The translations under genes were made by a program, and so were the position numbers. Under the pieces are notes generated by a model. It ran no database searches and was not told where the DNA came from. It saw only the letters and a list, made by a program, of their open reading frames with translations. Shown here piece by piece: positions 20,031-34,488 of a DNA stretch of 64,000 nt (the stretch's first letter is position 1; every line of letters starts with the position of its first letter). Where the stretch lies: the sequence record OZ196212.1; one strand, given 5' to 3'.

Positions 20031-20255
20031 TTAGTGTGCCATAGCTTGAAGTCTGCGCATACGATCACGCAGTTCAAGTTCAGATAAGTCTTCGACTTTC
20101 TCTTCCACTTTGAATTCTTCTACCGGCTCGCCGTCTTTCTTAGCATTGGGACCAATGTTATCCCACAATGGCGAGTTGTGCCACGCGTCTGAACATTGAT
20201 TACCCATACCGCGCCCTTGACGAGCACTTGATTTATCGTGAATTGATTTTGCCAT
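20031..20255 (-). CDS. hypothetical protein
   Basis: ORF coupled to 20255..20479. Confidence 0.6.
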   Translation of the reverse strand: MAKSIHDKSSARQGRGMGNQCSDAWHNSPLWDNIGPNAKKDGEPVEEFKVEEKVEDLSELELRDRMRRLQAMAH

Positions 20256-20479
20256 TATTCGTTTGACTTCTTAGTTACTTGTCGACCAACACCAACTGCG
20301 GCACCTACAGCAGCAGCACCGGCAGCTTTACCCGCTTTCTTAGCACCAGACTTGGCAGCAGACTTAGCACGATCTTTCACTGACGGCTTTTTCTTAGCAG
20401 GCTTTTTCTTGTCATCGGACGGCTTTTCTTTTTCTTCGTCTAACTGAGACATAAATTGATCAAATGTTTTGTCACTCAT
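20255..20479 (-). CDS. Lys/Ala-rich basic protein, probable internal head protein
   Basis: late TAAATA at 20507-20514, GGAG RBS, KTFDQFMSQLDEE leader. Confidence 0.6.
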   Translation of the reverse strand: MSDKTFDQFMSQLDEEKEKPSDDKKKPAKKKPSVKDRAKSAAKSGAKKAGKAAGAAAVGAAVGVGRQVTKKSNE

Positions 20480-20990: not shown

Positions 20991-21182
20991 CAGACATTCG
21001 TGAACAGTTTTAAAGTCTTTCGCATTAATCACATTTGACTTTCATGTTTAACGATACATGAATCCCTACCAACAAGTTGATAGTCGTACCTTCGAGTTTA
21101 TTGCTTTAAGTCACCGAGAATGCGGCTATGCGTTACTCTATCTCTTATTTAAGTTTTGTTAGTTGGTTGCTGTACAATGTCT
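20991..21182 (-). ncRNA. structured RNA closed by a CAGCAA-motif stem (element A)
   Basis: AGACATT-GTACAGCAA...ACG-AATGTCT-G; internal hairpins. Confidence 0.65.
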
Positions 21183-21192
21183 TTGCAAAATT

Positions 21193-21281
21193 TGGCGGAG
21201 ATACTGGGAGTCGAACCCAGAGAACGCTATTAACGTCCGACACCTTAGCAGGGTGCTGTCATACCATTAGACCATATCTCC
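21193..21281 (-). tRNA. tRNA-Ser(GCT)
   Basis: cloverleaf, long variable arm, CCA. Confidence 0.95.
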
Positions 21282-21418
21282 AGTTCGGAATGCTGCTCTC
21301 ATTCTCAACTACATATTTGCTCTTATCGCTGCCGTGTAGTACGAGCTTCGCAGGTTCGCTTTCGATAATTTTAAGAGCAGGGCGACTCATACCAACTCTA
21401 TTCAAGCGAACTTGAATT

Positions 21419-21496
21419 TGGTGCCCAACCCGAGATTCGAACTCGGAACTTCTAGCGTTTGAAACTAGCGACTCTGCCAGATTGGCCTAGTTGGGC
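21419..21496 (-). tRNA. tRNA-Leu(CAA), short variable arm
   Basis: cloverleaf, CCA. Confidence 0.9.
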
Positions 21497-21502
21497 AATG
21501 TT

Positions 21503-21579
21503 TGGTACGCGTGGGCGGATTCGAACCGCCATCCCTGAGATTTTAAGCCTCATGCCTCTGCCAATTGGACCACACGCGC
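21503..21579 (-). tRNA. tRNA-Leu(TAA)
   Basis: cloverleaf, CCA. Confidence 0.93.
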
Positions 21580-21581
21580 AT

Positions 21582-21655
21582 TGGAGCTCGTACACAGAAT
21601 CGAACTGTGACCAAGTGATTTGCAATCACTTATACTACCGTTATACGATACGAGC
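21582..21655 (-). tRNA. tRNA-Cys(GCA)
   Basis: cloverleaf, U73, CCA. Confidence 0.93.
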
Positions 21656-21665
21656 AAATGTACTT

Positions 21666-21742
21666 TGGGGTGACAGACGGGGATCGAACCCGCATTTTCC
21701 GGAATCACAACCCGGAGGTATTTCCACTTCACCCACTGCCAC
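21666..21742 (-). tRNA. tRNA-His(GTG)
   Basis: cloverleaf, C73, CCA. Confidence 0.92.
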
Positions 21743-21813
21743 ACCAAAGTACACTCTGGGACATATAACGTTTATCAACCGGACTCATTTACGTGGGTCA
21801 TTCGAGCAAAGCA

Positions 21814-22059
21814 CTACTTTGCTAGTAAGTTTTCTTTCTTGAGATATATACTATCACTTGAGAGTTCGCGAGTAAACATATTTCTGAAATAAATTTGCAC
21901 ATCGTCTTCAGTCGTGTTCGACTCAATTTTCTGCGCTAATTCGAGAATTTTGCTTCGCTTGTATCCCTTTCGCCAACAGTCAAACATCAGTTTGTCCATT
22001 TCTTTCAGTTTTTCGACCTGATTCGAGTGTACATATTCGCGTGTTTCAAGTAATGACAT
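21814..22059 (-). CDS. hypothetical protein
   Basis: MSLLETRE start; the longer track ORF overlaps tRNA-Val. Confidence 0.6.
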   Translation of the reverse strand: MSLLETREYVHSNQVEKLKEMDKLMFDCWRKGYKRSKILELAQKIESNTTEDDVQIYFRNMFTRELSSDSIYLKKENLLAK

Positions 22060-22079
22060 AGTATATTGCTCATAAAGAA

Positions 22080-22154
22080 TGGTAGTCCCTGAGAATTTCG
22101 AAATCTCGACCTTCGCCATGTAAAAGCGGTGCTCTGCCTCTGAGCTAAGGGACT
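22080..22154 (-). tRNA. tRNA-Val(TAC)
   Basis: cloverleaf, CCA. Confidence 0.9.
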
Positions 22155-22159
22155 ATAAT

Positions 22160-22235
22160 TGGAACGTGTAACGAGATTCGAACTCGTACCTTCGGTTTGG
22201 AAGACCGTAATGCTACCGTTAAACACCATACACGC
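22160..22235 (-). tRNA. tRNA-Gly(TCC)
   Basis: cloverleaf, U73, CCA. Confidence 0.93.
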
Positions 22236-22527
22236 ATTGTTAATCAGACGCATTGAACAAGTCTTGAATTGCTTTCAAGTTGCTCAACTCTACTTCAAGT
22301 GTTCTTATAAAGAACGGGTTAGTCTCTACAGAGAGACGATATTCAACATCGCGAATGAATCGACCGATGTTGCCCTTGCTTAGTGTAAAGTAGTCATGCT
22401 TCTTTCTCTTCGTTTGAGGTTAGAATTAGATGAACGTGTTCGTTAACTTCTTGCTCAATCTGCCATTGTTCATAGACATATTCAGCATACAAAAGTGTTT
22501 CGTACATAATTCACCTTTCTTAAAATG

Positions 22528-22604
22528 TGGTAGTGACTCTGAGGTTCGAACTCAGTACCAGCGGCGTATGAAACCACGACTTTACCATCATAAGCTAAGT
22601 CACC
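22528..22604 (-). tRNA. tRNA-Met(CAT), elongator-like
   Basis: cloverleaf, CCA. Confidence 0.85.
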
Positions 22605-22608
22605 AAAG

Positions 22609-23045
22609 CAGATATTAACGTATTTAATCAGCACACGGGCTTGACACCACATTGTTTGTGGTCTACGTGAAGAACCTCTGCACAACAATCCCGCTCTAAT
22701 TGCGTTATGTGGTGACTGTCACGAGGAATCTAGTCTTCTTTAAGTGCCTTTCGGCTGTAATAAAGTACAGACAATAACGAAGTGTTTTTTCGTCTTTTAC
22801 ATAAATCGCAGTTGACTATCTTGTTACTCTAACAAGCAAGTATCGACTACCTCAGCGTCGCGCCTAGACTGTGTATTTCTACACGCCACATCTTTCGTTA
22901 CAAGTCTCGACCTAGCACGTTGTTGCTGTGCTGAACGTCTCGAACCCACGCTAAGACCTAATCATTGTTTTAGTAGATTAGTAGTTTGGTTGCTGCATAT
23001 TGTCTTACGTGACAGTCAAACACACAATGCCGAAACAATATGCCG
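22609..23045 (-). ncRNA. large nested structured RNA containing a YrlA-like module (element B, 22768-23005)
   Basis: AGACAATA/TATTGTCT stem with GCAGCAA; 10-bp inverted repeat 23008-23017/22714-22723; T-loop GGTTCGAG. Confidence 0.55.
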
Positions 23046-23100
23046 AGACGTTCACGCTCTTATTTTTCAAGTTCACACTATCGTAGTGACTCTCGTGATA

Positions 23101-23176
23101 TGGCATCCCCAGAAAGATTTGAACTTTCAACCCCGAATTTAGAAGATTCGTGCTCTTCCAATTGAGCTATGAGGAC
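23101..23176 (-). tRNA. tRNA-Arg(TCT)
   Basis: cloverleaf, CCA. Confidence 0.9.
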
Positions 23177-23252
23177 ATCAATAAGATTCGAACCATAAGA
23201 TCTTGTGACACGATGGTAGTAAAGAGAGTGTCTATCTCATGTGTTCGAAATT

Positions 23253-23328
23253 TGGTGGAGCTTGAGGGTTACGATCCCTCTACTTCTCCGTGCAAGGGAG
23301 ATGTTTTACCGATTAGCACTAAAGCCCC
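23253..23328 (-). tRNA. tRNA-Ala(TGC)
   Basis: G3:U70; atypical T-loop ATCGTAA. Confidence 0.9.
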
Positions 23329-23335
23329 AAATTGT

Positions 23336-23548
23336 CTATTTTAACTCTGTGACGCCTATATTTTTCCAATCAAACAGACCATCGACATCTTCAAGCGATT
23401 CGCCAGTCACGTCTGCAATATAAGCAGCGACTTTCGATTCGATTTCGTCATTACTTAGAGACTCATCAACAGTGAAAATCTCTTCGTTGTTATTACCACC
23501 GAATGTGCCGTTAATGTCGTATTCACACCAAACTGATATGTATTTCAT
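23336..23548 (-). CDS. hypothetical acidic protein
   Basis: 70-aa ORF between tRNAs. Confidence 0.65.
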   Translation of the reverse strand: MKYISVWCEYDINGTFGGNNNEEIFTVDESLSNDEIESKVAAYIADVTGESLEDVDGLFDWKNIGVTELK

Positions 23549-23573
23549 AATGTCTCACAAAGTTAATAAAATA

Positions 23574-23648
23574 TGGTGCTCCCGGACAGACTCGAACTGC
23601 CATAACCTGATTACAAAACAGGGATAATCGCCTTTATATTACGGGAGC
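23574..23648 (-). tRNA. tRNA-Thr(TGT)
   Basis: cloverleaf, U31:U39 mismatch, CCA. Confidence 0.85.
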
Positions 23649-23652
23649 GAAA

Positions 23653-23764
23653 CTGAGTGTCGTTTATACCGCGTCTCCAAGACCTGAGATACCAACTCAG
23701 CATGGGATTCGAACCCACCGACGTTTCTTGTATCGAAAGAAATTTTAAATTGCTGTAAACACTC
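23653..23764 (-). ncRNA. circularly permuted tRNA mimic (YrlA-like, element D)
   Basis: GAGTGT-TTACAGCAA...T arm GTGGG-TTCGAAT-CCCAT, then CTGAG/CTCAG hairpin...ACG-ACACTC-AG. Confidence 0.7.
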
Positions 23765-23773
23765 TTAGTATTT

Positions 23774-23847
23774 TGGCTGGGGATAACGGACTCGAACCGA
23801 TACTGCGAAAGTCAAAGTTTCGTATGCTGCCATTACATCAATCCCCT
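23774..23847 (-). tRNA. tRNA-Gln(TTG)
   Basis: cloverleaf, unpaired 1:72, CCA. Confidence 0.9.
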
Positions 23848-23855
23848 ATTGTTCT

Positions 23856-24080
23856 TTAGCGACTCGAATTGATCTCATCGATCATTCGTTTAGCTAGTTT
23901 CGTAGCTAGTGCTTTATCAGCATCGCCAGTTGTTTCTATGTCGTATGCAATTTTACTCACATACTTTGAGTCTAGCGCACCCGCTGATTGTTTAGACCAG
24001 TGATCCTTGACTTTCTGATATTTCGTCATGTCAATCGAATCTTTTGTCGCTTCACCCAAAAATTCTGCTAATGTTTTCAT
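23856..24080 (-). CDS. internal head protein-like, with capsid-targeting sequence
   Basis: MKTLAEFLGEA; perfect TATAAATA at 24110-24117. Confidence 0.75.
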   Translation of the reverse strand: MKTLAEFLGEATKDSIDMTKYQKVKDHWSKQSAGALDSKYVSKIAYDIETTGDADKALATKLAKRMIDEINSSR

Positions 24081-24119
24081 ATCTCTATTCTTATTAAAGT
24101 GTAAAAACATATTTATATG

Positions 24120-24269
24120 CAAGATAACATACACGACGGCGTAAGTAGTCGTTCTTATGTTTAGACTAGAAATCCACGTCACATCATTAATGCTATAATT
24201 GCGCCACTCTCTACTATGAATATGTTATGCATTATTCATGCAGACTCTTCTTGCGCTGTAAATTATCTT
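24120..24269 (-). ncRNA. structured RNA with variant motif (element E)
   Basis: AAGATAA-TTTACAGCG...TTATCTT-G; starts right after the tRNA-Asp CCA. Confidence 0.45.
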
Positions 24270-24345
24270 TGGCGGAACTGACGGGGCTCGAACCCGCTTC
24301 CTTCTCCGTGACAGGGAGGTATGCACCCAGTTACACCTCAGCTCC
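24270..24345 (-). tRNA. tRNA-Asp(GTC)
   Basis: cloverleaf, CCA. Confidence 0.92.
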
Positions 24346-24366
24346 CCAAAGATAACTCTTTGTATT

Positions 24367-24439
24367 AAGACACTGTAATCGTTTGGTTTTTTTCTTCAAA
24401 TAAAAAATACTGGTTTGTTTGCAGAATGATTACTATCTT
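24367..24439 (-). ncRNA. minimal motif RNA (element F)
   Basis: AAGATA-GTAATC-ATTCTGCAAAC...ACG-ATTAC-AG-TGTCTT. Confidence 0.55.
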
Positions 24440-24444
24440 AAATC

Positions 24445-24520
24445 TGGCAGGGACACTCAGATTCGAACTGAGACCAACGGGTTTGGAATCCGTCATGCTG
24501 CCATTAAACACCATGTCCCT
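24445..24520 (-). tRNA. tRNA-Trp(CCA)
   Basis: cloverleaf, CCA end. Confidence 0.9.
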
Positions 24521-24568
24521 ATTGCGTATGAGGTGGCTTAAATCAGTGGTCACTCTCACGCTAAAATT

Positions 24569-24642
24569 TGGTACTCACGAAGAGAATCGAACTCTTATCT
24601 GACGGTTATCAGCCGTCTGCTTTACCGTTAAGCTACGCGAGT
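24569..24642 (-). tRNA. tRNA-Ile(GAT)
   Basis: cloverleaf, CCA. Confidence 0.93.
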
Positions 24643-24707
24643 AAAGTACGCTCGAAAGCGCACAATGTTAATCGGTTAAGTGACTAGCTCGACCAATGTA
24701 ACATATT

Positions 24708-24800
24708 TGGAGGAAGATAACGGAGTCGAACCGTCACCGCGCTACTAACGCAATGGGCTGGTTTTCAAGACCAGTTGCGAACCACATCGCCCTATCTTCC
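24708..24800 (-). tRNA. tRNA-Ser(TGA)
   Basis: cloverleaf, long variable arm. Confidence 0.92.
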
Positions 24801-24805
24801 TTTAA

Positions 24806-25054
24806 TTACTTATGTCGTCCCCAATACATCTTATCAAAGCTGTTTAGGTATTCTTCGACTTTAGCTACATCAGCCGCACTAACAACCCATTCGTTGTCTT
24901 GAGTCGTGCGTTTATTCGCAGGAACTGCTTTAGCGCCTAATTTAGCCATTGTGTTTCTGTGTCGTTCGCGATCCATTGATCCACTAAAAAGTGAGCCAGA
25001 TACGCCGTACGTAACGTCCGTTGCTTCTGCAAGAAACTCTTGTAAAGTTTTCAT
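24806..25054 (-). CDS. internal head protein-like, with capsid-targeting sequence
   Basis: MKTLQEFLAEA (T4 IPII/IPIII: MKTYQEFIAE); CTAAATAT at 25079-25086. Confidence 0.8.
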   Translation of the reverse strand: MKTLQEFLAEATDVTYGVSGSLFSGSMDRERHRNTMAKLGAKAVPANKRTTQDNEWVVSAADVAKVEEYLNSFDKMYWGRHK

Positions 25055-25098
25055 GTTTTCCACCATTGTCTTAAAACAATATTTAGACGTTTAAAAAT

Positions 25099-25175
25099 TG
25101 GATGCGTGGGAGTGGATTCGAACCACTGACCTCCGGCTTATGAGACCGACGAGCTGACCGCTGCTCTACCCCGCA
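25099..25175 (-). tRNA. tRNA-Met(CAT), fMet-like with irregular acceptor stem
   Basis: TGCGGGG/CCCACGCA with an extra A; CAT anticodon. Confidence 0.75.
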
Positions 25176-25179
25176 ATTA

Positions 25180-25365
25180 TTACTTACTGAACTGCACTAC
25201 ACAAGTATCTGATTGATACACTATCGTGCCAGTTGCTTCCGCGTCTATTTGAACGATGCAGCCATTTGCCCCATCTTCACCGCGTGATGCTACATCTTTA
25301 ATCGAAATGCCACTTGAACAAGCTGTCAATGACAGTGCAAGTGCTAATGCTGCTATTGCTTTCAT
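25180..25365 (-). CDS. small lipoprotein
   Basis: MKAIAALALALSLTA-C signal peptide and lipobox. Confidence 0.75.
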   Translation of the reverse strand: MKAIAALALALSLTACSSGISIKDVASRGEDGANGCIVQIDAEATGTIVYQSDTCVVQFSK

Positions 25366-25381
25366 GATGTTCACCTTAATT

Positions 25382-25468
25382 TGGTGGTTCGCCTAGGACT
25401 CGAACCTAGAAGCCCGTTCAAGGGCGAGGGATTTACAATCCCCTGACTTACCATTAGTCTAACGAACC
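25382..25468 (-). tRNA. tRNA-Tyr(GTA)
   Basis: cloverleaf, long variable arm. Confidence 0.93.
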
Positions 25469-25474
25469 AGAATT

Positions 25475-25548
25475 TGGTACTCCGTACGGGAGTCGAACCC
25501 GTCCCTTTAGATTGAAAGTCTAACGATCTACCAATAATCTAACGGAGC
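25475..25548 (-). tRNA. tRNA-Glu(TTC)
   Basis: cloverleaf, CCA. Confidence 0.92.
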
Positions 25549-25672
25549 ATTGAAAAATTATTTATTAGCAAACTAGCAAGTTATCTGAGATAATCATTTA
25601 ACGGGCCCAGCTAGTAAACTAATAGATAATTTCTCATCTAGAGATAGTTTAGTGACTTCTCAACGGTCAATT

Positions 25673-25747
25673 TGGTGCGTCGCCTGAGATTCGAACTCAG
25701 ACTTTTCTGGTTAAAAGCCAGATGTACTACCATTATACGAACGACGC
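25673..25747 (-). tRNA. tRNA-Lys(TTT)
   Basis: cloverleaf, CCA. Confidence 0.93.
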
Positions 25748-25753
25748 ATTAAC

Positions 25754-25828
25754 TGGTGCACCCTCTCGGAATCGAACCGAGCACTGTGGGACTTCACTCC
25801 ACCGCTTTTCCTGATAAGCTAAGGGTAC
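25754..25828 (-). tRNA. tRNA-Phe(GAA), atypical anticodon loop
   Basis: loop GT-GAA-GT; CCA. Confidence 0.8.
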
Positions 25829-25834
25829 TTTATT

Positions 25835-25909
25835 TGGCGGACGTGGAGAATTTCGAAATCTCGACCCCGGTGTTAACAGCACCGCGCTCTGCCTCTGAGC
25901 TACACATCC
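25835..25909 (-). tRNA. tRNA-Asn(GTT)
   Basis: cloverleaf, G73, CCA. Confidence 0.93.
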
Positions 25910-25914
25910 AAATT

Positions 25915-25991
25915 TGGTACGCAGAGAGAGATTCGAACTCTCAACTCCTAGTTTCTAAGACTAGCGGCTCTGCCAATTGGCCTACCTGCGC
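25915..25991 (-). tRNA. tRNA-Leu(TAG)
   Basis: cloverleaf, CCA. Confidence 0.92.
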
Positions 25992-26004
25992 ACTGTGTAA
26001 ATAA

Positions 26005-26079
26005 TGGTCGGAGTAGAAGAATTCGAATCTTCACCGCTCGGCCCCAAACCGACTATGCTGCCATTAACACCATACTCCG
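26005..26079 (-). tRNA. tRNA-Pro(TGG)
   Basis: cloverleaf, CCA. Confidence 0.92.
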
Positions 26080-26107
26080 AAAAACTTTTGTAGAACTTCG
26101 TTCTTAC

Positions 26108-26302
26108 ATTGTACATGATGTTTTCTTCGTTGTAAACATCTTTTTTGAAAAACTTTTCGTTCGTTTTCGAACGTTTAAATGCTTTTCTCTATTGTACATG
26201 ATGTTTTCGTCATTGTAAACATCTTTTTTTAAATCTTTTTGAATGACTTAACGTTTTTGTTTTAACACGTTAATCATATCACTCGTTTACGACTCGTTAA
26301 AC
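26108..26302 (-). promoter_or_regulatory. three tandem sigma70-like early promoters driving the left tRNA block
   Basis: TTTACA-N17-TACAAT at 26136-26108 and 26219-26191 with A-tract UP elements; TTTAAC-N17-TATGAT near 26300. Confidence 0.8.
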
Positions 26303-26378
26303 ACTTATTTGTGAATAATTTCGTTAAATTCTATCATCGCGACAGTAGATAACGAGACACGGTCCTAAACGTATCGTT

Positions 26379-26454
26379 TGGCACTCGATATAAGATTCGA
26401 ACTTATAACCTGCGCCTTCGTAGGACGCTGCTCTTCCAATTGAGCTAATCGAGC
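26379..26454 (-). tRNA. tRNA-Arg(ACG)
   Basis: cloverleaf, CCA. Confidence 0.93.
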
Positions 26455-26537
26455 ATTAAAGCTTGTTTGCTTTCTTTGTTTATCATACTCTGCTTTGAAA
26501 GCATGTTAAACAAAGAATTTCAGTTTATTTCGCCCAT

Positions 26538-26563
26538 AAAAAAGGACGCTAATCTGCGTCCTC
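26538..26563 (-). terminator. intrinsic terminator
   Basis: AGGACGC-AGATTA-GCGTCCTTTTTT. Confidence 0.75.
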
Positions 26564-26823
26564 AAGTATACTTCTATGTTATACTTTCGGACTACATTCG
26601 TGGATCCCATTTCTGGTTGCCAAACGTCGGATTCGCCAGATATACCGATACTGAGCTAAAGCGCATTTCGCTTCGTAAAATCTCAATATGTGTATTAGAA
26701 TGTGGCATCGTGGCTCTCTTTTCGAACGTAAAAATTGTTGTTTTGTTTTTTCTATAATTGTACTTATAAGACTAAAATCGAGGTTTCGTGCGTTTTTTGC
26801 AAAAAACCTCGAAAAAAGTGAAA

Positions 26824-27063
26824 TTATTTTTTAAAGTGCTTTCTTTTATTGCACTCAGCTAAGATTTCATTGTCATAATGATTCTGAAGCTGCTTGAATT
26901 TCTTGTGCTGATCTGGCGTTAGCTCATTCTCATCACGAAGATTTTTCAAGAACCCAAGAGGTTTACGAAACGACTTGCGATACGAGTCTAAACGCTGATC
27001 AGTCAAACCGACTAGTTGTTTAGGCGTTAGCAATGTCTTATTAATGTCAAAGTTCTTACTCAT
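26824..27063 (-). CDS. hypothetical basic protein
   Basis: 79-aa ORF with AAGGGG RBS. Confidence 0.65.
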   Translation of the reverse strand: MSKNFDINKTLLTPKQLVGLTDQRLDSYRKSFRKPLGFLKNLRDENELTPDQHKKFKQLQNHYDNEILAECNKRKHFKK

Positions 27064-27085
27064 GTGTTACCCCTTGTATTGAAAT

Positions 27086-27200
27086 TGGCTGACCGATGCG
27101 GGACTCGAACCCACGACCACGTGCTTAACAGGCAATTAGAAATGCGGTAGCGATACTTATCAATATCATTTACGTGCTCTACCACTGAGCTAATCGGTCA
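27086..27200 (-). tRNA. tRNA-Asn(GTT)-like RNA with a 38-nt insertion in the anticodon stem
   Basis: D arm, intact CT-GTT-AA loop, T arm, GCCA; insert 27134-27171. Confidence 0.75.
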
Positions 27201-27205
27201 ATTGT

Positions 27206-27449
27206 TTAGTTCGCTTTTGCAGTGCACCGAGCCACCTCAGAATTGATACATTTCGTTTGACGCGCATTCGGATGGTTACGCTTTGCGTCGTGAGTCTGTC
27301 AGCGATGCATGGCATACACACACCCCGTTTCTCACCTACTCTGCCCTACAGACGTTATCTGCTTGGTTAACAATTGCACTCGCATTAGGTATAACATGTC
27401 ACCGTCATCTTCCGGACGATTTCAGTGTATGCACTCAAAAGCGAACTAA
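27206..27449 (-). ncRNA. ~244-nt structured RNA of unknown class
   Basis: ~20-bp terminal helix TTAGTTCGCTTTTG-AGTGCA / TGCACT-GCAAAAGCGAACTAA. Confidence 0.65.
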
Positions 27450-27462
27450 TGTTGATTCTATT

Positions 27463-28011
27463 CTACTTCTCTCGCAATGTAAACAGCAGATTGCGATAAT
27501 CGAAGTTTCGTTTGTTCTTTGTATTGTAGAAGCTAGTCCAGTCGATTGCAACGGGACAATTCTTACTACCGACACGAGCAATGAATATCTCGTGTGTCGC
27601 GCTGTGCTTCGCGTTATAAGCTCTTACTCGTTTTTCATAGTGAGCTATGTATTCTGCACAAGCAGCGTTGTAATCAGCTCTAGAGAACGTCTTACCTTTC
27701 ATAAAGCGTGCATCAAGATACGGACGAATAACCCGAACGCGTTCTCCCGACCATGCCATATTAAAGCTGTTTTCAATTTCACCTAGAATTTGACCAGTCT
27801 TTAAGTTACGGCTCAGTATGACCCAACAGCGTGTACGACGATAGTCTTCAAAACGCATCACCTTAATGTGTGCATTAATGAATTCATCGCGTTTAGCGTT
27901 GCACTCAATGCGTGCTGCACGACGCTGTTCTTCAGTCATCGACTCTCGAACTTCTTTCGGATACAATGTAGCAAAGCGTTTCGGGCAATCTGCCATCGTT
28001 AGCTTTTTCAT
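27463..28011 (-). CDS. hypothetical protein
   Basis: 182-aa basic ORF. Confidence 0.7.
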   Translation of the reverse strand: MKKLTMADCPKRFATLYPKEVRESMTEEQRRAARIECNAKRDEFINAHIKVMRFEDYRRTRCWVILSRNLKTGQILGEIENSFNMAWSGERVRVIRPYLDARFMKGKTFSRADYNAACAEYIAHYEKRVRAYNAKHSATHEIFIARVGSKNCPVAIDWTSFYNTKNKRNFDYRNLLFTLREK

Positions 28012-28217
28012 ATCATACCTCTCTTGCGTTTAAGTTGCGAACGCTCAATTTGATTGAAGACTTGCTTATCTTTTGCTTTATTGCGTCGAGAATTACCCCA
28101 ACGACTTCCAGCACATACACCAAAGCGGTCTTTTTTAAGCTTCTTAGCTAACCACAATGGTACTTCGACACGAGCACGTAAGTAGTGCTTTGCGATGTCT
28201 TTATAAGTCTTGCCCAT
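28008..28217 (-). CDS. hypothetical basic protein
   Basis: GAGG RBS, MGKTYKDI start. Confidence 0.65.
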   Translation of the reverse strand: MGKTYKDIAKHYLRARVEVPLWLAKKLKKDRFGVCAGSRWGNSRRNKAKDKQVFNQIERSQLKRKRGMI

Positions 28218-28230
28218 GATAATTTCCTCT

Positions 28231-28471
28231 TGTTGCCGCTCCGTGGAATCGAACCACGTCAAACACAACACCTCGTCAGCCCAATAAGAGTTTCGAAGTA
28301 AGAGCTTACTAGCACATTAAAGCACGGGGCATTATTTCTCTCAAGCAGTTTTCGACCACCGCGTGAGCTTTCTTATCCCCAGTCCCAGTGATTCAGAACG
28401 AAACATGATAGCGAGTCATGAGTTGAACTAATGTTGGGAAAACACTGCGTATTGTACACCGAGTAAGCGGC
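28231..28471 (-). ncRNA. tmRNA-like RNA (tRNA-like domain closing ~200 nt)
   Basis: GCCGCTT/GAGCGGC acceptor, CGTGG-TTCGATT-CCACG T arm, no D stem. Confidence 0.6.
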
Positions 28472-28485
28472 ATTGTTAATAAACT

Positions 28486-28605
28486 TGGTGCCCTACGTGA
28501 ACGTTGAACGTTTTTCTACTTAGCTTCCATCTACCTCACTCAACGAAGAGCTATAGATTCCGTCAAGGTCTACTTCCACTTGACTAAGCGATTCAAACGT
28601 AGGAC
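28486..28605 (-). ncRNA. 120-nt CCA-ended non-tRNA stable RNA
   Basis: GTCCTACGT/ACGTAGGGC-A-CCA; nested helices; no T arm. Confidence 0.65.
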
Positions 28606-28644
28606 ATATTTTGAAAGTAGTCTCGTAAAACTACTTTGAGAATA

Positions 28645-28722
28645 TGGTGACCCTCGTGGGACTCGAACCCAACTATCTTTCGGTTATGAGCCGACTGCTT
28701 TTACCAGTTAAGCTAAAGGGCC
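28645..28722 (-). tRNA. tRNA-Ile2(CAT, lysidine type)
   Basis: GGCCCTT acceptor like ileX; CT-CAT-AA loop. Confidence 0.8.
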
Positions 28723-29105: not shown

Positions 29106-29228
29106 TGGTGGAGAGTGCGGGATTCGAACCACGCGGCCAAAAGATTTACTTAGTTAGTGTTTGCAGCATGAATACTTGACAATATTCTGTCAACGTTCTT
29201 TTGCTCTACCAGACTGAGCTAACTCTCC
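29106..29228 (-). ncRNA. CCA-ended tRNA scaffold with motif insert in place of the anticodon loop (T1)
   Basis: GGAGAGT/ACTCTCC-A-CCA, D arm, AAAGA/TCTTT stem enclosing ~52 nt. Confidence 0.7.
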
Positions 29229-31990: not shown

Positions 31991-32521
31991 TTAAACTATC
32001 GGGCTTATAACAACTTCTTTGCCATCTATCTTGTGTATCATTTCAAAGTAAGCGTATTCAAACTCAACGTCACATGTTACGACTTCAACATCACCTGCTT
32101 CTGTATAGTTCCATTCAACTTGACTTAATGACTTAGGGAACGCATTGATAAAACGATACGTTGCTACAATCTTGTCTTTGTTGTTGTCTAGAATATGAAG
32201 CAGAAGCGTTGATGGAACTTTACCATCGGGATTACTTGGTCCATTCGGATTGTTCATCGTTAACATCCAACGATATAGCTCTGCGTATGTCTTGAGATCT
32301 TCATCGACTAGAAACTGAATCGATAGCGAGTCGTAACTTGTTGCAGACCCTGCAATGTTGTTGTCAGCTAGTTTCGCGTATTTTGGACCTCTTGCGATAC
32401 TAGCAACTTCCATATTGACACCTGGGATAGCGGCAGATTGAATCTGCCACACGAACGTTTCAGTTGCGTTATTATCTGGTATGTCGATTCGGAAGTTATT
32501 CTTCATCGTTACGTTTTTCAT
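31991..32521 (-). CDS. 3: tail tube terminator / sheath stabilizer gp3
   Basis: YDSLSIQFLVDEDLKTYAELYRWM; T4 synteny. Confidence 0.85.
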   Translation of the reverse strand: MKNVTMKNNFRIDIPDNNATETFVWQIQSAAIPGVNMEVASIARGPKYAKLADNNIAGSATSYDSLSIQFLVDEDLKTYAELYRWMLTMNNPNGPSNPDGKVPSTLLLHILDNNKDKIVATYRFINAFPKSLSQVEWNYTEAGDVEVVTCDVEFEYAYFEMIHKIDGKEVVISPIV

Positions 32522-34488
32522 TACTGCGATACCCTCTGTGTAGTTCCGTTGTGTTTAGCACCACCACCAGAAACTAATGGACTTGCAAAGTTCGTTGTTT
32601 TTTGCTGCACTGAACTCACTGCTTGATTGACGATGTTGTTACCAACCGATGCTGCGTTTCTAGCAGCTTCTGCCGCTGCTTTCTGCACTGCAAGGGCTTC
32701 TAGTATCACTGCATTAGAAACCGTCTTAGCGCCCGCTACACCCTCTGTAATCATACGCTGTCTTTCAGCTTCAATTGCTGCTTGTTCAGCCATTTGCTTC
32801 TTCTCAAGTTCCATTGACAAGAAGTTGTCTAGACCTTCCGCTGAAGCTGCTAGTCCGTCAACTGGTTTAGAAAGTGTGTTACCAATGCTCTTGGCACTTT
32901 CAACAACGACTTGTCCCGCTGCTTTTGCACCATCGACTACAGCACTACCCATTTTCCCGATATAATCAGTCTCGTAGTTTGCGTTCAATCGTTCTTTGAT
33001 TGCTGCGCTTTCGCCATCTAAGTTTTCGCGTTTAGCTGTCAACTTGTCTTTGGCTAATGAATCTGGTCTATCGATTCCCGGTATCCAGTCAATCATTTCA
33101 GCAGCCATTTCTTGAACACTTAGCATCATTCGTTCGATTGCGTTCATCAGCAACGCGAATGAATCAGGAATGCTCATGAAACTCGCGATGATCTTGTTCA
33201 AGTTGTTGACAAACATGTTGAACGTGCTCTTAACAAACCCGACTACTTTATCAAACGCGCCGACGATTCCTTCGACTGCTCCCTCTGGAACTGCGTCTTT
33301 GATGTTGTCGCCAACTAATCCGAACCATGCACCGATTCCGTGTATAACGTCGCTGAACCATTGAGATACTAATCCGAATAGCAATTGTCGTTTCTCTGGG
33401 TCCATGAATATAGATTTCAATGCACCGAAAATGCGATCAATCTCTTCTTCGAAGATCTTATAGATACCGTAACCTGCAACAAGACCGACTAGTGCAACTG
33501 GGTTCAATAGAACTGCAATCACGCGTCCAAGCCCGAAGAATATCTGTCTCGCGACTGACTTCATCATTGTCTTAGCTACTTCACCAAATCCCTGCTCGGC
33601 TAAGATTTTAATCATCTTACCACTGCCGCCAGTCAATTTACCAAATCCTGATAGAGCCATTGCAGCGAGTTGTCCTAGTTTGCCGAACTTCGTAGCAGTC
33701 GCAGCCGCAGTTCCCATCGCACTACTGAAAGTCACGATTTGACCGCCAAGCATCATCAAGCCAACGCCGACGATTCTGAACAACTTAACAATCCATCCAA
33801 GCTGACGACCAGTTAGGTGATTCGCAATTCGTTTTAGATCACTTGCTTGATTGCGCTGAACTTTCATGTTCGCTTTATAGCGATGCAATTCAGTTTTACG
33901 GTCACGCGTACGCGAAACTGTTTCATATGCGAAGATCTTCTGATACAATGCGCTTATAAAGCCCACAGTGAGCGGTGAGTTATTACCCCGACCCGATGTT
34001 AGGAAACTATTCAAATCGTCGGCAGTCGTCTTCTGAAGCCCGATTATGCGCTTCATATCGTTCACTCTGAAGATTAGACGCTCGAACCAACGAGTGAATC
34101 CCTCTTGCATACGCATGAATCCGAGTTTAGCCGTCACTTTCATTTCTTGAATGCCGCGATCAATGCGCGACAAATGACCTTTAAAGTCGAGTGTCGTTTT
34201 GATCACATCGGTCAGTGAAATGATCGACGCTCGTAGTTTATTTGATCCTTCTTGGAAGTTCTCGCCAATTCGCTGAAACAGTGATTTTTGCTGAATCGTT
34301 TGCTTTTCATTGACTTTGAAAACAGACTTCATCGTGTCGAGCAATGACGTGGTGCTCACGTCTATATTGGCGACGTGACGAGCCACACGCTGCATCGTGT
34401 AGACTTCTGGTCTGTCTTCTTGTTGTAAAATCACATGATCTAATCGGTTGATTATCTCTTGTAATTTTTTGTTATTATCAGCCGACAT
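32521..34488 (-). CDS. 29: tape measure / baseplate hub gp29-like
   Basis: 655-aa helical Ala/Gly-rich protein with hydrophobic segments, next to gp26/51. Confidence 0.6.
   Translation of the reverse strand: MSADNNKKLQEIINRLDHVILQQEDRPEVYTMQRVARHVANIDVSTTSLLDTMKSVFKVNEKQTIQQKSLFQRIGENFQEGSNKLRASIISLTDVIKTTLDFKGHLSRIDRGIQEMKVTAKLGFMRMQEGFTRWFERLIFRVNDMKRIIGLQKTTADDLNSFLTSGRGNNSPLTVGFISALYQKIFAYETVSRTRDRKTELHRYKANMKVQRNQASDLKRIANHLTGRQLGWIVKLFRIVGVGLMMLGGQIVTFSSAMGTAAATATKFGKLGQLAAMALSGFGKLTGGSGKMIKILAEQGFGEVAKTMMKSVARQIFFGLGRVIAVLLNPVALVGLVAGYGIYKIFEEEIDRIFGALKSIFMDPEKRQLLFGLVSQWFSDVIHGIGAWFGLVGDNIKDAVPEGAVEGIVGAFDKVVGFVKSTFNMFVNNLNKIIASFMSIPDSFALLMNAIERMMLSVQEMAAEMIDWIPGIDRPDSLAKDKLTAKRENLDGESAAIKERLNANYETDYIGKMGSAVVDGAKAAGQVVVESAKSIGNTLSKPVDGLAASAEGLDNFLSMELEKKQMAEQAAIEAERQRMITEGVAGAKTVSNAVILEALAVQKAAAEAARNAASVGNNIVNQAVSSVQQKTTNFASPLVSGGGAKHNGTTQRVSQ

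Follow-up and report, generated by a model that had tools for sequence, protein, structure and literature searches.

Internal proteins of phages such as T4 enter the host cytoplasm ahead of all other phage proteins, and in T4 each of Ip1, Ip2 and Ip3 inhibits a different GmrSD type IV enzyme (PMC12373910). For one of them, IPIII, residues 1–10 are enough for head incorporation; within this leader, residues 4 and 7 mainly govern targeting and residues 8 and 10 processing, and the prohead protease gp21 cleaves after the Glu of an L/I-x-E motif (PMC9026906). Outside the T-even coliphages, internal proteins are almost unannotated. Here we analyse two small genes, ORF-A and ORF-B, that lie between tRNA genes in a 64,000-nucleotide (nt) stretch of sequence record OZ196212.1 (the window). 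We conclude, with a probability of about 0.75 for the whole mechanism proposed below, that their products are T4-type internal proteins of Schizotequatrovirus.

The window phage is a KVP40-like Schizotequatrovirus of the 6E35.1a/D491s group: window positions 21000–28000 are 100% identical to Vibrio phage D491s (OZ195931.1, 210375–217375) and 99.9% identical to Vibrio phage 6E35.1a (MW824377.1), both of which are ~253-kb Straboviridae phages of Vibrio crassostreae and relatives of KVP40. The window holds 26 tRNA genes at 21193–28722 (ARAGORN), every one on the minus strand. Both open reading frames (ORFs), first proposed in a sequence-only reading, are indeed present between tRNA genes of this array, also on the minus strand. 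That reading had called them hidden, which they are not, as MW824377.1 carries them as the hypothetical proteins QZI87516.1 and QZI87515.1. The two genes and their surroundings are as follows.

23856..24080, minus strand: ORF-A (QZI87516.1 / VP6E351A_0391), 74 amino acids (aa), a 10-residue T4-type leader plus a predicted 64-aa basic mature part with an isoelectric point (pI) of 8.9; between tRNA-Asp and tRNA-Gln
24051..24080, minus strand: ORF-A leader, codons 1–10, ending in L-G-E and followed by Ala11
24110..24117, minus strand: TATAAATA, full late-promoter motif for ORF-A, 29 nt before the ATG
23857..24119, minus strand: ORF-A cassette (promoter, leader, body and stop), absent as one block from sister phage D484
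24270..24345, minus strand: tRNA-Asp, upstream neighbour of ORF-A
23774..23847, minus strand: tRNA-Gln, beginning 8 nt past the ORF-A stop codon
24806..25054, minus strand: ORF-B (QZI87515.1, annotated four codons longer / VP6E351A_0394), 82 aa, a 10-residue leader plus a predicted 72-aa basic mature part, pI 9.1; between tRNA-Met and tRNA-Ser(tga)
25025..25054, minus strand: ORF-B leader, codons 1–10, ending in L-A-E and followed by Ala11
25080..25087, minus strand: TCTAAATA, late-promoter-like motif for ORF-B, 25 nt before the ATG
25103..25176, minus strand: tRNA-Met, upstream neighbour of ORF-B
24708..24800, minus strand: tRNA-Ser(tga), beginning 5 nt past the ORF-B stop codon

For comparison, T4 ipI, ipII and ipIII were translated from region 62000–77000 of NC_000866.4, the T4 genome accession given in PMC8056088. 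The proposed closeness of the two N-termini, MKTLAEFLGEA and MKTLQEFLAEA, to the T4 IPII/IPIII leader is borne out, with 7/11 identical residues for ORF-A and 9/11 for ORF-B over the first 11 positions. A six-frame survey of the ~253-kb genome gave 2,959 Met-started frames that were 40 aa or longer; behind ORF-B and ORF-A, the highest score was 5/11, reached by two frames, and the leaders of ORF-A and ORF-B are clear outliers in the whole genome. One frame scoring 5/11 lies inside a 655-aa ORF (32521–34488) and was discarded, its Met being internal and not a gene start. Both leaders have Leu4, Phe7, Leu8 and Glu10, then Ala11, whereas T4 has Tyr at residue 4, and the prohead-protease motif L-x-E is kept at residues 8–10. 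In orthologues of the two genes, the leader residues critical in T4 are retained and the positions between them vary.

The phage itself encodes a gp21-family prohead protease (Peptidase_S77, E = 8e-97) and a gp22-type scaffold (T4_CASP, E = 2.5e-69), and its gp22-, gp68-, gp23- and Alt-like proteins each have L-x-E close to the N-terminus, with Ala or Thr as the next residue. Position 1 of the PHROG phrog_2667, ‘internal head protein’, aligns with residue 1 of both ORF-A and ORF-B (E = 0.03–0.04), and ORF-B also matches phrog_8111, another internal-protein PHROG, weakly and again from residue 1.

Particles of this phage have been analysed by tandem mass spectrometry (MS) in two replicates (PMC12028318; ISME J 2025), with 94 proteins detected (Table S4 there) from a genome of ~442 coding sequences (CDS). 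The sequence-only reading had staked its proposal on presence in virions, and both products are found in both replicates: VP6E351A_0391 (ORF-A, 10 kDa) with 12 and 13 spectral counts and VP6E351A_0394 (ORF-B, 9 kDa) with 6 and 10 (PMC12028318, Table S4), the two locus tags being equated with QZI87516.1 and QZI87515.1 in Table S8 of the same study. The 94 include the product of no other small ORF in the tRNA array, and the text of PMC12028318 contains no mention of a capsid-targeting sequence. The published data are counts at the level of whole proteins; per kDa of predicted mature product, ORF-A and ORF-B reach ~1.0–1.8, in the range of tail sheath and protease, against 0.02–0.45 for obvious contaminants. 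The T4 portal is present in 12 copies; because the portal outscores the tail sheath per kDa, copy number was not read from the spectral counts. The T4 leader comparison, the protease and scaffold genes and the virion MS of both products all support the reading of ORF-A and ORF-B as T4-type internal proteins, and we regard their packaging in the head as highly probable.

A third small gene with such a leader lies just outside the tRNA array, and its product was also recovered from particles.

20255..20479, minus strand: third leader-bearing small gene (QZI87522.1 / VP6E351A_0380; p0252), 74 aa
20508–20515, minus strand: TCTAAATA, late-promoter motif before this gene

This protein has a leader-like N-terminus with L-D-E at its end; the 59-aa tail behind it is rich in Lys and Ala and of low complexity, with a pI of 10.3. 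The protein is 100% conserved in 18 phages and gave 14 and 15 counts in virion MS. It is classed under ‘lysis from within’ in PMC12028318; from its composition it looks like a DNA-binding internal protein. A loosened leader pattern, run over the whole genome, returned four ORFs, namely ORF-A, ORF-B, p0252 and p0027 (MW824377.1 12233–12793). Of these, p0027 was looked up after the sequence prediction and proved to be detected in particles (7/21 counts). Taking the leader as a predictor of detection, four of four has a hypergeometric probability of 0.002, a value to be read with the detection of p0252 having already been known when the pattern was run. The third-ranked true gene start in the leader scoring (5/11), p0039 (MW824377.1 20004–20597), was looked up after ranking and is likewise detected (12/17 counts). 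For p0106 (MW824377.1 59255–59905; 31/79 counts), the leader was found in the opposite direction, from the MS table back to the sequence. These last three proteins are 186–216 aa long and have leader-like N-termini with L-x-E. In all, 6/6 leader-like gene products were detected in particles, compared with 94 of ~442 CDS overall, and the phage carries at least six candidate head-packaged proteins. As a separate observation on the particle proteins, the 286-aa p0114 (MW824377.1 60275–61135 region), encoded beside the Alt homologue, gave 16 and 61 counts; it belongs to PHROG 6387 according to Table S8, and a 159-aa leader-bearing ORF of phage F86 matches the same PHROG weakly.

In its details, the locus resembles T4 in some respects and departs from it in others. 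With T4 IPII and IPIII, ORF-A and ORF-B share a near-identical 10-residue leader, an (I/L)-x-E motif followed by Ala, small basic mature proteins and a tRNA cluster in the gene neighbourhood; the mature parts, by contrast, show no similarity, and the PHROG matches of ORF-A and ORF-B are confined to the N-terminus. The mature form of IPI, IPI*, is of comparable size and charge character (76 aa, pI 9.0, compared with 64 and 72 aa, pI 8.9 and 9.1), and T4 ipI has a similar setting, ~1 kb from the first tRNA of its cluster. However, IPI has a 19-residue leader that diverges after residue 7, its body is dissimilar, and searches of solved structures with ORF-A and ORF-B give nothing relevant. IPI* is also described as two β-sheets flanked by helices, whereas the low-confidence models of ORF-A and ORF-B are all-helical. 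T4 DNA contains glucosylated hydroxymethylcytosine (glucosyl-hmC), whereas the phage studied here carries dPreQ1 and infects Vibrio, and whereas the T4 internal proteins have proven targets (GmrSD variants), those of ORF-A and ORF-B would be putative. A more distant likeness is to T4 Alt and phage P1 Dar, which are also head-packaged and delivered with the DNA, and the phage's own Alt homologue, which is plentiful in particles, likewise has L-x-E near its N-terminus. Alt and Dar differ in relying on targeting signals of their own and in being large enzymes or multi-protein systems, not small cassettes of a leader and an ORFan.

Expression of the two genes is predicted to be late. T4 late promoters have the consensus TATAAATA, spanning −13 to −6; relatives, KVP40 among them, conserve its first base poorly (PMC1524935). 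The proposal that each gene has its own TAAATA late promoter holds in that a motif is present upstream of both, with the reservation that the one before ORF-B is a variant of the consensus and not the full motif. Within the window, TATAAATA occurs six times (1.9 expected), and five of these copies are followed within 75 nt by an ATG-started ORF of 50 aa or more, the ORFs in question being tail-fibre genes, a tail lysozyme gene, the fibritin gene and ORF-A; the sixth is 82 nt upstream of another copy, which precedes the fibritin gene. The variant TCTAAATA precedes three further ORF starts in the window besides that of ORF-B. The shorter TAAATA is not over-represented in the window overall (33 copies, 36.7 expected), and 21/33 copies have an ORF start of the same kind (ATG, 50 aa or more) 5–75 nt downstream, compared with 23% for random positions (p = 6e-7); many of the ORFs preceded by the motif are structural genes.

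The motif positions imply transcript starts near 24104 for ORF-A and near 25074 for ORF-B. From the former, the ATG at 24080 would be the first ATG of the ORF-A late mRNA; from the latter, the ORF-B ATG at 25054, which has GGTGGA before it, is favoured over the ATG at 25066, and the annotated longer versions (84 aa and 86 aa) are accordingly disfavoured. Since the ORF stops lie only 5–8 nt before the tRNA genes, the late transcripts probably run on into them. Three further TAAATA motifs on the tRNA strand, at 22621–22626, 25559–25564 and 21146–21151 (all minus), have no ORF behind them, and parts of the tRNA array may be driven directly by late transcription.

Comparison with relatives shows the two genes to vary between phages. 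In D484, the ORF-A unit is missing from promoter to stop as one block, with flanks that are otherwise identical, and this clean absence indicates that the unit is discrete and dispensable. ORF-A is further missing from F86, KVP40 and phi-ST2, and ORF-B from KVP40, VH1_2019 and nt-1. In nt-1, the slot between tRNA-Asp and tRNA-Gln is likewise filled by an ORF-A orthologue, with 49% identity, and orthologues of ORF-B with 58–66% identity are present in phi-ST2-like phages and F86. In a tblastn search of 50,697 phage records, orthologues were confined to Schizotequatrovirus and Mylasvirus. The tRNA arrays of nt-1, F86 and KVP40 contain or adjoin leader-bearing ORFs with other bodies, each with TAAATA ~25–35 nt upstream, and phi-ST2 likewise carries a promoter-plus-leader unit on a different cargo in or beside its array. 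When seven such 5′ regions, representing at least four body families, were aligned, the TAAATAT and TTTA blocks and the ATGAAAAC start were invariant.

This arrangement recalls the T-even ip loci, which are reported to be polymorphic (Repoila et al. 1994) and to have yielded more than 30 internal-protein variants (Comeau et al. 2007), both works as cited elsewhere. Common to both are a shared leader, unrelated and interchangeable bodies, and presence that varies among close relatives. The T-even genes are grouped in two loci, whereas the cassettes described here are scattered within a 26-tRNA array; and the T-even loci are described with early-promoter-like elements, in contrast to the late-promoter-plus-leader 5′ end of these cassettes. 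The T4 genes run in the order 57A-57B-ipI-trna.4/.3/.2, eight tRNAs, e-ipIII-ipII on one strand (NC_000866.4), and in an Enterobacter Kanagawavirus a leader-bearing ORF stands in the ipI position with tRNAs downstream. These gene orders indicate that the tRNA neighbourhood was inherited from a T4-type layout.

The leader is widespread. When IMG/VR was scanned for exact matches to its back-translated pattern, with residue 11 left unconstrained, at least 117 loci were returned, with at least 129 leader-bearing ORFs of 25–547 aa, most of which have an in-frame stop only a few codons upstream. The 125 of at least 50 aa fall into at least 70 body clusters; some cargo families recur, one of them with at least 12 members. 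Among the matches listed, residue 11 is Ala or Ser in 61% of the 129 ORFs, a preference that fits a conserved cleavage site.

The mature parts yielded no informative homologue. As the sequence-only reading had stated, the bodies of ORF-A and ORF-B are unrelated to each other (no BLASTP alignment at E ≤ 100). A word-indexed protein search with either ORF returned only the proteins themselves, and a HMMER scan of 1.84 billion representatives with ORF-B returned only itself and one 46-aa fragment. Comparison of both with Pfam, PADLOC and PDB sequences gave no meaningful match; weak matches to a mucin C8 domain, a cadherin and an iron-binding protein were taken as chance. Homology of the mature parts to T4 Ip1, Ip2 or Ip3 was not found: their PHROG matches are weak and start at residue 1, with no PDB or Pfam match, compared with E-values of 1e-47 to 1e-116 for the T4 internal proteins against their own PHROGs. 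The body of ORF-A does show 34% identity over 58 aa to a DUF5661 (PF18905) region, a weak likeness (E = 0.001 in a 125-sequence database). The partners in this comparison are IMG/VR leader-bearing proteins of 363–433 aa in which the domain directly follows the leader; ORF-A itself has no direct Pfam match to DUF5661 and an hhalign probability of 12.6%. The DUF5661-containing leader proteins are represented by L035:2325–3413 (minus strand), with relatives in L017, L040 and L108.

The mechanism that we propose follows the T4 model. Each gene would be transcribed late from its own gp55-type promoter and on into the adjoining tRNA gene, as suggested by the motifs and their spacing. During prohead assembly, residues 1–10 would bind the protein to the gp22-type core; this is suggested by the leader identity and by the residues critical in T4 being kept or conservatively replaced (a hydrophobic residue 4, Phe7, Leu8 and Glu10). 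The proteins then end up in particles, as the published virion MS shows, subject to the purity of the preparation. With both enzyme and motif present, the gp21-family protease is predicted to cut after Glu10, leaving basic proteins of 64 and 72 residues. By analogy with T4, the mature proteins would be ejected along with the DNA and become active at the very start of infection, where their likeliest job would be to block a first-line host defence against incoming dPreQ1-bearing DNA. The DNA of 6E351A has dPreQ1 at 15% of deoxyguanosine (PMC12028318), and Table S9 has type IV systems for some of the susceptible hosts; at least the production host, 22_O_6, carries one (our own column count). If the proteins are packaged, we give such an anti-defence role, argued from the T4 precedent, a little less than an even chance.

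Several observations weigh against this account. The nt-1 orthologue of ORF-A has Phe, not Leu or Ile, three residues before the Glu; in the ORF-B orthologues the leader is no better conserved than the body; and Leu4 is rare, occurring in only 4/129 leader-bearing IMG/VR ORFs among the matches listed. The main role of the late-promoter motifs could be expression of the tRNAs downstream. The particles were precipitated with polyethylene glycol (PEG), with no density gradient mentioned (PMC12028318), and replication and lysis proteins are among the 94 at low counts; detection alone is therefore no proof of a location in the head. No tie links the mature parts to a defence or anti-defence family, and Table S8 has no match to an anti-defence hidden Markov model (HMM). 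Finally, single-sequence AlphaFold models are of low confidence (predicted local distance difference test (pLDDT) scores of 60 and 55).

The alternative that survives best accepts packaging by the leader and differs over what follows: the proteins would be structural or physical helpers, neutralising the charge of the DNA or assisting core assembly, packaging or ejection, with no specific host target. IPIII was once proposed as such a helper, and T4 IPIII mutants assemble heads more slowly (PMC9026906). Both mature parts are basic, the Lys/Ala-rich tail of the 20255–20479 product resembles a DNA counter-ion, and ORF-B is core in 18/18 phages with a ratio of nonsynonymous to synonymous substitution rates (dN/dS) of 0.05, a pattern not usual among fast-evolving counter-defence genes. 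However, the net charge of each mature part is a modest +2, ORF-A is dispensable, as its clean absence from D484 and the lack of it in F86, KVP40 and phi-ST2 show, and mutually unrelated bodies fit diverse targets better than a generic role; moreover, all three T4 internal proteins are specific nuclease inhibitors (PMC12373910). For ORF-A and ORF-B we therefore consider a helper role possible and the less favoured explanation; a generic DNA-associated role is nonetheless a serious rival, especially for the 20255–20479 product.

Much less probable is simple co-precipitation, in which ORF-A and ORF-B would be cytoplasmic proteins made abundantly late in infection and carried down with the particles, their leader being no longer, or never having been, a working signal in this phage. 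The PEG-only preparation would allow this, and single-strand DNA-binding protein, dUTPase, ligase and spanins are indeed among the 94. Contamination fits poorly, however, with the detection of every one of the six leader-bearing products against the background of 94 in ~442, with the presence of ORF-A and ORF-B in both replicates at counts per kDa well above those of the obvious contaminants, with the failure of any other small tRNA-array ORF to appear, and with the retention of the T4-critical leader residues across orthologues in which others vary.

That the small ORFs instead serve the tRNA array, through processing, modification or regulation, would explain their position and probable co-transcription with a tRNA gene 5–8 nt away, but this is the least credible explanation, given that the products have no RNA-binding or tRNA-modifying family match and are found in particles, that unrelated bodies at other places in the genome, far from tRNAs, carry this leader too, that only 12/129 leader-bearing IMG/VR ORFs among the matches listed have a tRNA within 2 kb, and that the T4 ip genes adjoin a tRNA cluster without having a tRNA function.

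If ORF-A and ORF-B are T4-type internal proteins, a broader and more tentative reading is that the Schizotequatrovirus tRNA array acts as a landing strip for cassettes of late promoter, leader and ORFan, and that their cargoes are new injected inhibitors. The targets would be Vibrio defences that meet 7-deazaguanine-modified DNA, type IV enzymes for example, and the inhibitors would be unrelated in sequence to T4 Ip1–3. We find no recognition of leader-bearing internal proteins of this genus in the searchable literature, and a full-text search combining KVP40 with ‘internal proteins’ returned nothing relevant, although an earlier mention in the KVP40 genome paper is possible. The sequence rule used here (a T4-like leader with L-x-E, and a late motif for the three genes of the window) singles out six proteins, all of which the published proteomics had in particles with the leader unrecognised, and so provides a short list of probable delivered proteins. 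In addition to its dPreQ1-modified DNA, the phage has an unusually broad host range, and data on its host range and host defences are already published. Since at least 70 unrelated bodies in IMG/VR carry this leader, the rule could be used to annotate delivered proteins across the T4 superfamily.

Other features of the tRNA array and genome were noted in passing. Between tRNA-Met and tRNA-Tyr lies a 64-aa ORF (25180–25374, minus strand; QZI87514.1) that is conserved within the group, has a lipoprotein-type signal (a hydrophobic stretch followed by Cys) and is absent from the particle protein list. Two more small ORFs of the array, at 23336–23548 and 21814–22119 (both minus), lack the leader, are conserved in KVP40 and nt-1 with unchanged position, and are not among the detected virion proteins. 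In GenBank, nrdA and nrdD of MW824377.1 are each annotated as two fragments, with one break per gene. Two Rfam tRNA matches of 110–120 nt, at 27090–27199 and 29109–29228 (both minus), have no ARAGORN call; the former is ‘tRNA-OTHER’ (pseudo) in GenBank, with counterparts of 113–116 nt in KVP40 and phi-ST2, and both may be tRNAs carrying an insertion or intron.

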